Source: Octopus vulgaris (lineage: Eukaryota). From it: a DNA stretch of 64,000 nt. Under the pieces are notes generated by a model. That model saw only the letters and a program-made list of their open reading frames with translations. It had not been told where the DNA came from and searched no databases. The translations under genes and the position numbers were made by a program. The stretch is from the NCBI GenBank assembly GCA_951406725.2, contig OX597814.1, forward strand, positions 310,001 to 374,000, given 5' to 3'. This document shows, piece by piece, positions 9,978-23,979 of the stretch (positions within the stretch are counted from its first letter, which is position 1; each line of letters opens with the position of its first letter).

Positions 9978-10081
9978 TCAAGAATGTTCAGAATAAGGTG
10001 GAGGGTCTTCTTTTGGTAGCATAGTACACATTGAAGGATCTTCAAAATATGGGGGACCATAAACCTCATTTGCAGGTGGCG
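9978..10081 (-). CDS. Coding exon 5 (cytoplasmic tail and stop)
   Basis: Acceptor cttttgttttacag|CG, phase 1. Encodes (A)PPANEVYGPPYFEDPSMCTMLPKEDPPPYSEHS then TGA at 9980-9978. Confidence 0.88.
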
Positions 10082-22000: not shown

Positions 22001-23979
22001 TTATTATTATCGTTATTATTATTATTATTATTATTATTATTATTATTATTATTATTATTATTATTATTATTATCGTTATTATTATTATTATTATTATTAT
22101 TATTATTATTATCATTATTATTATTATTATTATTACTATTATTATTATCATTATTATCATGATTATTATTATTATTATTATTATTATTATTATTATTATT
22201 ATCGTTATTATTATTATTATTACTATTATTATTATTATTATTATTATTATTATTATTATTATTATTATTATTATTATTATTATTATTATTATCGTTATTA
22301 TTATTATTATTATTATTATTATTATTATTATCATTATTATTATTATTATTATTACTATTATTATTATCATTATTATCATTATTATTATTATTATTATTAT
22401 TATTATTATTATTATTATTATTATCGTTATTATTATTATTATTATTATTATTATTATTATTATTATTATTATTATTATTACTATTATTATTATCATTATT
22501 ATCATTATTATTATTATTATTATTATTATTATTATTATTATTATTATTATTATCGTTATTATTATTATTATTATTATTATTATTATTATTATTATTATCG
22601 TTATTATTATTATTATTATTATTATAATTATCATTATTATCATTATTATTATTATTATTATTATTATTATTATTATTATTATTATCGTTATTATTATTAT
22701 TATTATTATTATTATTATTATTATTATTATTATTATTATTATTATTATTATTATTATCATTATTATTATTATTATTATTATTATTATTATTATTATTATT
22801 ATTATCGTTATTATTATTATTATTATTATTATTATTATTATTATTATTATTATTACTTTTATTATTATCATTATTATCATTATTATTATTATTATTATTA
22901 TTATTATTATTATTATTATTATTATTATTATCGTTATTATTATTATTATTATTATTATTATTATTATTATCGTTATTATTATTATTATTATTATTATTAT
23001 TATTATCATTATTATCATTATTATTATTATTATTATTATTATTATTATTATCGTTATTATCATTATTATTATTATTATTATTATTATTATTATTATTATT
23101 ATTATTATTATTATTATCGTTATTATTATTATTATTATTATTATTATCATTATTATCATTATTATTATTATTATTATTATTATTATTATTATCGTTATTA
23201 TTATTATTATTATTATTATTATTATTATTATTATTACTATTATTATTATCATTATTATCATTATTATTATTATTATTATTATTATTATCGTTATTATTAT
23301 TATTATTATTATTATTATTATTATTATTACTATTATTATTATCATTATTATCATTATTATTATTATTATTATTATTATTATTATTATTATCGTTATTATT
23401 ATTATTATTATTATTATTATTATTATTATTATTATTATTATCGTTATTATCATTATTATTATTATTATTATTATTATTATTATTATCGTTATTATTATTA
23501 TTATTATTATTATTATTATCATTATTATCATTATTATTATTATTATTATTATTATTATTATTATTATTATCGTTATTATTATTATTATTATTATTATTAT
23601 TATCATTATTATCATTATTATTATTATTATTATTATTATTATTATTATTATTACTATTATTATTATTATTATTATTATCATTATTATCATTATTATTATT
23701 ATTATTATTATTATTATTAAGGTGTCGAGTAGCAGAGTCGTTAGCACACCAGGCAAAATGTTTACATCTGTCAGTACTCACTTCACTACGACCACTAACA
23801 CTCTACTTTCACTATCATAACAGCACTATTGCCACCACCACCACCACTACCATAATCGCCACCCCCCCCCCAACACCATCATGATACTTACTTCTTTTAA
23901 CTTCCTCTTCTGTTCTTGAAACAGAAATATAGAGAAGCAGCAATAGGAATATCTCATAGAAGAAGTTCACTTTCGCCAT
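9978..23979 (-). CDS. Five-exon gene for an uncharacterised ~238-aa single-pass membrane protein (signal peptide, CUB-like domain, TM helix, PSAP/PPxY tail)
   Basis: Join of 23979-23892, 19976-19750, 18289-18160, 12938-12771, 10081-9978 = 717 nt with no internal stop. All introns are GT-AG with matching phases 1,0,1,1. Product: MAKVNFFYEIFLLLLLYISVSRTEEEVKRISFDYYQCNRKTYIDVTKTKFEVNTLSQSTVLYRATSCNLTFKTEDGDICMDIKNINIEDCYVKLNVFTDNTSGPKEVFSCNPSPTDFICSQRKLLRIELVRKNLDVYNYDFTLIVMRKDGPMKTIIITIVVIIIIIIAIVIAVCYCSKCSKEKRTVNGTVLPVQQINHEQIRPSAPPANEVYGPPYFEDPSMCTMLPKEDPPPYSEHS*. Confidence 0.88.
10915..11588 (+). mobile_element. CR1/L2-group LINE 3' fragment
   Basis: LYIAMVRPHLEFASPVWNPYLAQDIDRLEAVQRRATKRI...YPERL RT C-terminal motif; internal deletion near 11160; (TTA)n tail. 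Confidence 0.88.
11592..11849 (-). mobile_element. tRNA-headed SINE
   Basis: Head gtggaggcctgtggcttagtggttagg; body ctgcgatggactggcgtcccgtccag. Confidence 0.8.
12771..12938 (-). CDS. Coding exon 4 (transmembrane helix and juxtamembrane region)
   Basis: Acceptor catttcag| (alternative in-frame AG 12 nt upstream, exon start 12950), donor TCAG|gtaagt, phase 1 to 1. Hydrophobic run TIIITIVVIIIIIIAIVIAV followed by CYCSKCSKEKR. Confidence 0.9.
13481..13705 (+). mobile_element. Short RLE LINE 3' fragment (family D)
   Basis: VIGSLG...LQKRAILYSVRILR C-terminal motif; (TAA/GAT)n flanks. Confidence 0.75.
13790..14850 (-). mobile_element. Penelope-like element remnant: GIY-YIG endonuclease region between ~300-bp inverted terminal copies
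   Basis: 13822-14121 is the near-perfect reverse complement of 14552-14850. Inner minus strand reads PCSLC...GRCKDSHLVYAAEC..H / RFNGHRFDVRH...LAEHF...LKVHIL...EEKYVCGLLTSGPGGMN. Confidence 0.85.
14882..15407 (+). mobile_element. RLE LINE 3' fragment (family C)
   Basis: MIQCDHKIENRRPDIVLIEKENKLRWIIDIACPAD..K..KY..L..VVPILVRALG; (TAA)n on both flanks. Confidence 0.9.
16300..18026. repeat. 34-bp minisatellite, about 50 units, in intron 3
   Basis: Unit gttatcccacatctggctctcatcaaactccaat with 33-bp variants; no unique spacers. Confidence 0.97.
18160..18289 (-). CDS. Coding exon 3 (C-terminal part of CUB-like domain)
   Basis: Acceptor cttctttcag|GAG, donor AAGG|gtaagt, 130 nt, phase 0 to 1. Encodes EVFSCNPSPTDFICSQRKLLRIELVRKNLDVYNYDFTLIVMRK. 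Confidence 0.9.
18365..19090. repeat. Purine-rich (GGA/GAA) low-complexity block followed by (GGT)n and (GAT)n, in intron 2
   Basis: Direct reading. Confidence 0.95.
19581..19675 (+). mobile_element. Penelope-type 3' tip with 14-bp terminal hairpin
   Basis: ttgacggatattta...taaatatccgtcaa; homologous to 63660-63716 (reverse). Confidence 0.5.
19750..19976 (-). CDS. Coding exon 2 (N-terminal part of CUB-like domain)
   Basis: Acceptor tattttccag|, donor AAG|gtaagt, 227 nt, phase 1 to 0, four Cys, sequons NLT and NTS. Confidence 0.9.
20030..20235 (+). mobile_element. Probable LINE 3' end whose tail resembles the SINE-1 tail
   Basis: Ends gagcccttgtggctaataaaagaattt(att)n; compare SINE-1 gccccttgtgggcaataaagaaata. 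Confidence 0.45.
20834..21328 (-). mobile_element. RLE LINE 3' fragment (family B)
   Basis: Encodes VKDFRQKSCLLIDMTVPLDINISVKTYQKLSKYKDLEIEI...IPVVIGAL; (ATT)n on both sides. Confidence 0.88.
21329..23719. repeat. ~2.4-kb (ATT)n array with ATC/GTT/ACT interruptions, in intron 1
   Basis: Direct reading; source of the 800+-aa poly-Ile/Asn/Tyr ORFs. Confidence 0.99.

Follow-up and report, generated by a model that had tools for sequence, protein, structure and literature searches.

A mollusc family of predicted CUB-headed membrane proteins with conserved PSAP and PPxY tail motifs, approached from an octopus locus

A gene with five coding exons occupies the minus strand at positions 9978-23979 of a 64,000-nucleotide (nt) stretch of AT-rich, repeat-laden animal DNA from Octopus vulgaris (contig OX597814.1, positions 310,001 to 374,000), a stretch to which we refer as the window and in whose positions all coordinates are given. 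The gene encodes a small protein, predicted to pass the membrane once, with a CUB-like ectodomain and a cytoplasmic tail in which two short motifs, PSAP and PPxY, are conserved across molluscs. An initial annotation, made from the letters of the DNA, had described this gene as a complete but hidden one, specifying a CUB-like receptor of 238 amino acids with no nameable orthologue. The gene annotation, the CUB domain and the CUB labels on relatives are already known; what is new is the family itself and the joining of a predicted CUB head to a PSAP/PPxY tail, undescribed in the literature searched.

Gene structure, isoforms and octopus orthologues

Within positions 9978-23979, a prokaryote-style list of open reading frames (ORFs) holds fragments only, as had been remarked before. 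Four exons were found directly by reading the minus strand (coding exons 1, 2, 4 and 5 in Table 1), and their phases require one further exon, of length 3n+1, between 19749 and 12975. When all open AG...GT intervals with the required phase were enumerated (267 in total), the one that is listed as coding exon 3 ranked first, with a pyrimidine tract of 16/20 and the donor AGG/GTAAGT. The donors are GTAAGT at four of the four introns, every acceptor is an AG following a pyrimidine tract, and the spliced coding sequence (CDS), 753 nt in five exons of matching phases, translates into 250 amino acids, in agreement with the five-exon structure, canonical splice sites and matching phases originally proposed.

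Coding exon 4 can begin at any of three acceptors, the sites being 24 and 12 nt apart and each in phase. Use of the acceptor before 12974, 12950 or 12938 deletes 0, 8 or 12 stalk residues, respectively, resulting in proteins of 250, 242 and 238 residues, and these are exactly the lengths of the isoforms X1, X2 and X3 annotated in O. sinensis, O. vulgaris and O. bimaculoides. The 238-residue product of the initial annotation is, then, a real isoform, but the shortest of the three. Isoforms in other molluscs differ elsewhere, at the N-terminus in Ostrea and Patella and by one stalk residue in Littorina.

The claim of a complete gene stands for the coding region of the main isoforms, which lies entirely within positions 9978-23979, but not for the transcript, which has at least one further 5' exon outside this interval. 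One annotated O. vulgaris isoform has 269 residues, its 29 extra N-terminal residues splicing onto an acceptor, cag/GTAACC, located 6 nt upstream of the ATG (cag/GTAACCATGG) and also kept in O. bimaculoides, and a search of the window in all six frames did not reveal the upstream exon of this isoform. At the other end of the gene, neither AATAAA nor ATTAAA is present in the 1 kb downstream of the stop codon.

Table 1. Features of the gene and of the surrounding DNA, in window coordinates. Residues are numbered as in the 250-residue isoform; protein features are predicted.
Feature	Position	Strand	Description
Exon 1, probable start	23985	-	Follows an acceptor cag that is conserved in O. bimaculoides
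Coding exon 1	23892-23979	-	88 nt, ends in phase 1; ATG at 23979; residues 1-29 + 1 nt
Intron 1	19977-23891	-	Phase 1, GTAAGT...CAG; carries the 2.4-kb (ATT)n array
Coding exon 2	19750-19976	-	227 nt, ends in phase 0; residues 30-105, N-terminal two thirds of the CUB domain; C37 and C67 (canonical C1, C2), C79 (extra), C90 (canonical C3); sequons N68-L-T and N100-T-S
Intron 2	18290-19749	-	Phase 0, GTAAGT...CAG; carries (ATG)n and (GGA)n arrays
Coding exon 3	18160-18289	-	130 nt, ends in phase 1; residues 106-148 + 1 nt, C-terminal third of the CUB domain; C110 (canonical C4), C119 (extra)
Intron 3	12975-18159	-	Phase 1, GTAAGT...TAG; carries the 34-bp minisatellite
Alternative-acceptor zone	12938-12974	-	Acceptors before 12974, 12950 and 12938, each ag/AT, in phase
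Coding exon 4	12771-12974	-	204 nt, ends in phase 1; residues 149-216; stalk 149-165; C186, C188, C191
Transmembrane helix	12924-12856	-	In coding exon 4; residues 166-188
PSAP, first half	12777-12772	-	In coding exon 4; P215 S216
Intron 4	10082-12770	-	Phase 1, GTAAGT...CAG
Coding exon 5	9978-10081	-	104 nt including the stop; residues 217-250
PSAP, second half	10081-10077	-	In coding exon 5; A217 P218
PPPY	10004-9993	-	In coding exon 5; residues 243-246
Stop codon TGA	9980-9978	-	In coding exon 5
(ATT/AAT)n microsatellite	21329-23719		Intron 1; 2.4 kb, 92% matches
(GGA)n and (ATG)n arrays	18380-19068		Intron 2
34-bp minisatellite	16307-18037		Intron 3; about 51 copies, 169-bp higher-order period
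Dispersed SINE-like repeat	19410-19577, 12584-12737, 13198-13347, 15521-15752		Intronic; about 150-170 bp
326-residue ORF	45412-46392	+	Pfam zf-RVT
ORFs with 'RPDI' motif	25194-25616, 14981-15247		Motif shared with the 326-residue ORF

A search of 5.8 billion proteins led to two clusters, of O. sinensis LOC115219259 isoform X1 (250 residues) and of O. bimaculoides LOC106869895. The translation is 100% identical to four O. vulgaris entries (CAI9714691-94, e.g., CAI9714694.1), 99% identical to O. sinensis XP_029645276.1 and 93% identical to O. bimaculoides XP_052829736.1, and the entries from the three species describe the same gene, with five coding exons and isoforms of 250, 242 and 238 residues, there being no substantive difference between them. 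The earlier description of the gene as uncharacterised holds, all of the octopus entries being labelled 'uncharacterized' or 'hypothetical', and literature searches revealing no mention of the locus names, accession numbers or SRA runs. It is not hidden, however, as NCBI and ENA annotations already hold all three isoforms, and orthologues can be named, given the two octopus loci above and relatives in about 20 species of gastropods and bivalves.

Conservation of the gene is evident at several levels. All five exons, and the dinucleotides at their splice sites, are matched in the O. bimaculoides locus (L004), and identity at the DNA level is 96.5% for exon 2 and 97.7% for exon 3, versus about 75-91% for alignable introns and flanks. 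Nei-Gojobori estimates of the ratio of non-synonymous to synonymous substitution rates (dN/dS) for the same pair of species are 0.21 over the entire CDS and 0.05 over the ectodomain residues 30-148 (2 non-synonymous versus 9 synonymous changes). An uninterrupted 771-nt CDS for one homologue (P0011), 38% identical to the octopus protein, lies on a contig of 1462 nt that resembles a transcript and was assembled from a public sequencing run; the homologue follows the octopus protein colinearly through all four junctions, being without about the same eight stalk residues as isoform X2. Judged by sequence, this is a conserved, expressed-looking gene, the O. vulgaris orthologue of LOC115219259 and LOC106869895.

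The contrary view, of a non-functional locus, either a chance string of ORF fragments or an annotation artefact copied between octopus genomes, could point to every octopus record having been made by automated pipelines, and to the locus being embedded in repeats. Against it stand the GTAAGT donors at all four introns and the same structure kept in O. bimaculoides, the dN/dS value of the CUB domain, the excess of exon over intron identity just described, the full-length homologues found across gastropods and bivalves, the homologues of other species on intronless transcript contigs, and a model that folds confidently. We consider such an artefact very improbable indeed, and reject it on the grounds of the dN/dS values and the conserved splice sites.

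A divergent ectodomain in a mollusc family

The protein appears to be of type I single-pass topology. A signal peptide is probable at its hydrophobic N-terminus (MAKVNFFYEIFLLLLLYISVS), where AlphaFold2 (AF2) models a helix over residues 4-21, and the six-cysteine, beta-rich ectodomain would be followed by the transmembrane helix, spanned by an AF2 helix at residues 163-193, and by a tail of about 62 residues. This matches the cysteine-rich beta-type ectodomain, membrane helix and short tail that had been read from the DNA.

As to the nature of the ectodomain, a sequence-profile search alone cannot make the CUB call. Counting against the call, neither the octopus protein nor its exon 2 and exon 3 pieces match Pfam CUB (PF00431, gathering score 21.4 bits) even at E<=10, and a profile of 19 family ectodomains searched against Protein Data Bank (PDB) sequences returned no CUB chain, only a chance match to a nucleoporin (E=0.9). 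What the octopus protein does match in Pfam is CYYR1, below threshold, along with unspecific matches over the transmembrane region. A phmmer search of PDB sequences with the octopus protein likewise gave only a match of the transmembrane region to desmoglein (E=0.6). As the octopus sequence falls below the Pfam CUB threshold, the call rests on relatives and on the predicted fold. Three homologues do pass the Pfam threshold, Elysia marginata P0023 (34.3 bits, E=3e-8, profile positions 7-107 of 110), Arion P0013 (22.9 bits) and Solemya P0014 (21.6 bits), and matches at E<=1 occur in 6 of the 19 family members. The octopus protein finds the CUB-passing members by phmmer with E values of 3e-14 to 5e-6, providing a transitive link to CUB, and UniProt names several of the homologues 'CUB domain-containing protein'.

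The cysteines and the predicted fold point in the same direction. The Elysia protein aligns to the second CUB domain of PCPE-1 (CUB2; E=0.007), its cysteines falling on canonical C2, C3 and C4, and, via this alignment and the family alignment (A3, 19 sequences), the canonical C1-C4, which in CUB domains pair as C1-C2 and C3-C4 disulfides, correspond to octopus C37, C67, C90 and C110, of which C67 is present in at least 90% of the members and the other three in most. C79 and C119, a putative extra pair specific to the family, do not vary among its members. The acidic residues of the Ca2+ site are seemingly not conserved, as far as can be inferred from one weak pairwise alignment (P0023 versus PCPE-1 CUB2); such residues are found in a subset of CUB domains and are not obligatory. 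When AF2 was given near-identical octopus sequences only, the model was unusable, with a predicted local distance difference test (pLDDT) score of 41.6. With the 19-sequence mollusc alignment, the pLDDT reached 74.6 overall and 75-94 in the ectodomain, which was modelled with about nine strands. In a Foldseek comparison of this model with the PDB, 13 of the 15 top matches were CUB-containing chains, the best being spermadhesin 1spp_B (E=3.3e-5, target TM 0.77, root-mean-square deviation 2.8 A), followed by aSFP, Kremen, PCPE-1, enteropeptidase, MASP-1, Neto2, C1r, neuropilins, cubilin and TSG-6; the non-CUB matches, such as a collagenase collagen-binding domain and an enterotoxin C-terminal domain, were few and superposed worse. 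The exons also fit, the CUB module (exons 2 and 3) lying between phase-1 introns, with a phase-0 intron inside. Overall, a single divergent CUB domain is supported by the relatives and by the modelled fold, as is the initial CUB-like reading, including its argument from flanking phase-1 introns and its proposal that a predicted fold unrelated to CUB would speak against the domain: CUB structures rank first.

The relatives of the octopus protein form a family. A phmmer search of 1.84 billion cluster representatives (E<=1e-3) gave 23 matches, most of them 240-300 residues long and aligning from the ectodomain via the transmembrane helix into the tail. Every species-named family match is a mollusc, the remaining few being transcript contigs. 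The gastropod members are from Patella, Lottia, Littorina, Arion, Bulinus, Elysia, Plakobranchus and Haliotis, and the bivalve members are from Solemya, Argopecten, Pecten, Ostrea, Crassostrea, Saccostrea, Potamilus, Sinanodonta and Mactra. No relative from another phylum was detected in this search, nor in word-indexed searches, which are weak in this respect: one, with alignment A3, returned only octopus and Crassostrea proteins, missing A3's own members, and is uninformative on other phyla, and another, with Patella P0012, returned gastropods only, so that very divergent non-mollusc relatives could escape. As far as these tools see, the family appears restricted to molluscs, and the term lineage-specific in the initial annotation applies at the level of molluscs but not at the level of octopuses.

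Copy number varies within the family. A single copy of the gene is seen in octopus, and, tandem paralogues having been suggested as something to look for, tblastn against the window finds only the gene's own exons, whereas oysters have several paralogues on one chromosome. In Crassostrea virginica and Ostrea edulis these paralogues (P0025-P0027, P0031, P0032, P0054-P0057) share one chromosome-scale contig; most of them are without PSAP, some are also without PPxY, and some are apparently truncated. This pattern suggests local duplication with loss of the putative sorting tail. One further variation concerns the very C-terminus, which in several gastropods and bivalves is a valine (Patella ...KQPV, Ostrea ...PEPV, Littorina ...PTKV, Mactra ...KGCV) and could be a PDZ-type ligand, the octopus protein ending in ...SEHS.

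Tail motifs and candidate functions

The conserved PSAP and PPxY motifs of the tail were overlooked in the initial annotation, and they present the best lead to a mechanism. We examined the tails of 17 core members, representing cephalopods, gastropods and bivalves, with composition-preserving shuffles of each tail providing the expectation. Exactly one PSAP (nearly always PSAPP) is present in 17 of 17, located 29-44 residues after the transmembrane helix, versus 0.35 expected, and at least one PPxY, located near the C-terminus, is present in 17 of 17 (one to three per member), versus 2.3 expected; the sequences being related, these counts measure conservation and not independent origin. A juxtamembrane cysteine cluster, likely a palmitoylation site, is also present in all 17 at the cytoplasmic end of the transmembrane helix. 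The rest of the tail is poorly conserved and modelled as disordered (pLDDT <50). Searched against Pfam, the transmembrane helix and tail have sub-threshold similarity only, to CYYR1, Rcr, WBP-1, Comm and MLANA, all of which we take to be short membrane proteins with PY motifs. In octopus, the codons of the PSAP motif are interrupted by intron 4, the A217 codon being split by this phase-1 intron.

PPxY motifs bind WW domains of the NEDD4-family HECT ubiquitin ligases. The P(S/T)AP motif binds TSG101 of the endosomal sorting complex ESCRT-I (reviewed in PMC6874086). The PPxY motifs of CYYR1 bind the WW domains of WWP1, WWP2 and ITCH, with WWP1 being sent to lysosomes (PMC11399591), LRAD3 activates Itch and Nedd4 through PPxY (PMC5331069), and Comm, Rcr1, PRRG4 and Shisa are short transmembrane proteins with PY motifs that govern the amounts of other membrane proteins at the surface (PMC5578492). 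By analogy, the octopus protein may be a single-pass adaptor or receptor, with a CUB head, that recruits NEDD4-type ligases and ESCRT-I, and this is the function toward which we lean, at somewhat better than even confidence. In such a scheme, the partner bound by the CUB domain would be either a ligand outside the cell or another membrane protein nearby, the PPxY of the tail would contact WW domains and so recruit NEDD4-family HECT ligases, the PSAP would recruit ESCRT-I via the UEV domain of TSG101, and the protein with its bound partner would be ubiquitinated and then sorted to endosomes and multivesicular bodies (MVBs) or into budding vesicles. The broader proposal, of an undescribed mollusc family of CUB-headed adaptors whose PSAP and PPxY tail couples CUB-ligand binding to ESCRT-I and NEDD4, delivering ligands or neighbouring receptors to MVBs or shed vesicles, with alternative acceptors tuning the reach of the head, is more tentative, and we would put it at somewhat below even. 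If true, the three conserved acceptors in octopus would tune the distance from the CUB domain to the membrane.

Some observations weigh against the adaptor scheme. The octopus tail has only one PPxY, and CYYR1 needed two for robust binding of WWP1 (PMC11399591); a GPPY near the octopus PPPY is lost in O. bimaculoides; with a dN/dS of 0.33, against 0.05 in the ectodomain, the tail is the faster-evolving part. Being also a PxxP motif, PSAPP could bind SH3 domains instead. The presence of a motif is not proof of binding, and the topology and the signal peptide are themselves inferred.

The same parts allow for other readings. If the CUB domain simply binds an extracellular protein or glycan, the protein would plainly be a receptor for a ligand or for adhesion, its proline motifs serving as docks for SH3 or WW signalling proteins rather than as sorting signals. 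Interaction with proteins is a general role of CUB modules (spermadhesins, PCPE-1, cubilin and neuropilin are all among the Foldseek matches), PSAPP and PPPY fit general PxxP and WW ligands, and the strong purifying selection on the ectodomain is in accord with such a role. Yet the tail, short and disordered as it is, has no kinase, immunoreceptor tyrosine-based motif (ITAM/ITIM) or other signalling module, is poorly conserved beyond the cysteine cluster and the two motifs, and these two motifs, P(S/T)AP and PPxY, together mark ESCRT/NEDD4 clients where studied; we find a plain receptor unlikely. An auxiliary subunit of an ion channel or receptor, like Neto1/2, SOL-1/SOL-2 or LEV-10 and in line with one of the roles raised in the initial annotation, in which the CUB domain would dock on the channel and tune its gating or clustering, the tail motifs being secondary, appears to us just as improbable. 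The single-pass CUB architecture fits it, Neto2 CUB domains are among the Foldseek matches (7f59_E, E=7e-4; 9n4q, 9n4p), and it is compatible with a role in trafficking. However, Neto2 ranks below spermadhesins, Kremen, PCPE-1 and MASP, all CUB structures matching about equally, and the invariant PSAP and PPxY are left unexplained. Of a member of the Neto/SOL-1/LEV-10 class one would expect multiple CUB domains and/or LDLa, along with detectable homology to those proteins, whereas the octopus protein has a single CUB domain, no LDLa match in Pfam and no sequence relative outside molluscs in the searches.

Orthology to vertebrate CYYR1, of the STMC6/Shisa-like superfamily, with the ectodomain replaced or extended by a CUB domain, is suggested by the best Pfam match of the octopus protein (E=5.4e-6, 27.3 bits, residues 157-247), by CYYR1 being its precomputed Pfam label in the protein database, and by CYYR1 matches in 8 of the 19 family members. 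The single transmembrane helix and PPxY tail of CYYR1 are found here too, the PPxY motifs numbering one in octopus and one to three elsewhere in the family, and cysteines in or after the transmembrane helix along with PPxY motifs are listed as CYYR1 features (PMC5578492). However, all of the matches are below the gathering score of 31 for CYYR1 (PF10873), those of other members scoring 16.8-25.0 bits, and they span the profile from about 49 to 128-145 of 149, i.e., the transmembrane helix and tail, missing the Cys/Tyr-rich N-terminal part from which the family takes its name. The 119-residue CUB ectodomain does not show the Shisa-like C*C*CC*CC pattern (PMC5578492), its cysteines being single and separated. 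Rcr, WBP-1, Comm and MLANA give matches of similar weakness, which points to a common composition, of a transmembrane helix and a Pro/Tyr-rich tail, and not orthology. We rejected CYYR1 orthology on the threshold and the ectodomain, and rate it as quite unlikely. Our preference remains with the putative adaptor recruiting NEDD4-type ligases and ESCRT-I.

Intronic repeats and comparison with known systems

Large simple repeats are present in the introns (Table 1), in line with the microsatellites reported around the exons at the outset. The orthologous site of the (ATT)n array of intron 1 in O. bimaculoides (L004 3255-3283) has only about 27 nt, or about 9 units, a difference to be explained either by lineage-specific expansion of roughly 90-fold or by collapse of the array in the other assembly. 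An array orthologous to the 34-bp minisatellite is found in the same O. bimaculoides intron (L004 about 7431-8551), and this array must thus predate the split of the species. The dispersed repeats resembling short interspersed nuclear elements (SINEs) each match several sites in the O. bimaculoides locus at 72-79% identity, and ARAGORN, run on positions 9000-25000, detected no tRNA-like gene in them. Elsewhere in the window, the 326-residue ORF matches Pfam zf-RVT at 27.7 bits (threshold 27.5), which marks it as a retroelement remnant, and two other ORFs share an 'RPDI' motif with it and have no Pfam match.

In more general terms, a reading from sequence letters can rebuild a correct multi-exon eukaryotic gene along with a correct remote domain call. 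The gene itself represents a family that has gone unstudied and was encountered here in molluscs alone; this family joins a predicted CUB ectodomain to two classic sorting motifs. All of the parts are familiar and no long-standing question is resolved, and a specialist would find the proposal plausible rather than surprising; if it is true, the gene would be a candidate regulator to be followed in expression atlases of cephalopods and bivalves.

Beyond the octopus orthologues, the closest known systems include the named mollusc homologues, Patella caerulea A0AAN8PIX5, Lottia LOTGIDRAFT_238736, Arion A0A0B7AQF6, Elysia marginata A0AAV4HW43, Potamilus A0AAE0T8P9, Ostrea edulis LOC125655291, and Argopecten and Pecten LOC117324181. 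They share with the octopus protein an end-to-end architecture, of a predicted signal peptide, six-Cys CUB, transmembrane helix, CCC(K), PSAPP and PPxY, at only 23-30% identity, and differ in that most have two PPxY versus one in octopus and in the juxtamembrane cluster, YCCCK versus CYCSKC in octopus. The canonical CUB proteins (spermadhesins PSP-I/II, aSFP, PCPE-1, MASP-1/2, C1r, neuropilin, cubilin, Kremen, Neto2) are alike in predicted fold (Foldseek E 3e-5 to 5e-3), in the four canonical cysteine positions and in the flanking phase-1 introns, but are only about 10-18% identical to the octopus ectodomain, which has the extra pair C79 and C119.

With regard to the tail, the comparison is with the short PY-motif adaptors, Comm, PRRG4, yeast Rcr1/2, Shisa, the STMC6 group (CYYR1, WBP1, WBP1L, VOPP1, TMEM92) and LDLRAD3, which are likewise small and cross the membrane once, their extracellular part being a single small module and their disordered tail carrying L/PPxY motifs for WW domains of the NEDD4 family (PMC5578492, PMC11399591, PMC5331069). 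No member of these families can be recognised as a homologue at curated thresholds, the likeness consisting of the motifs and of weak similarity over the transmembrane helix and tail; moreover, the predicted octopus ectodomain is a CUB domain and not a Cys-rich, Gla or LDLa module, and its tail adds an invariant PSAP. If the tail works as proposed, a CUB version would be added to the class of adaptors setting surface levels that includes Comm, PRRG4, Shisa, CYYR1 and LDLRAD3. The combination of P(S/T)AP with PPxY is known from ARRDC1. In ARRDC1 and in viral late domains (the latter reviewed in PMC6874086), this same pair recruits TSG101/ESCRT-I and NEDD4-type ligases for budding or MVB sorting, and, while those proteins are cytosolic or matrix proteins of unrelated sequence, in octopus the two motifs are carried by what is predicted to be a type I membrane protein.

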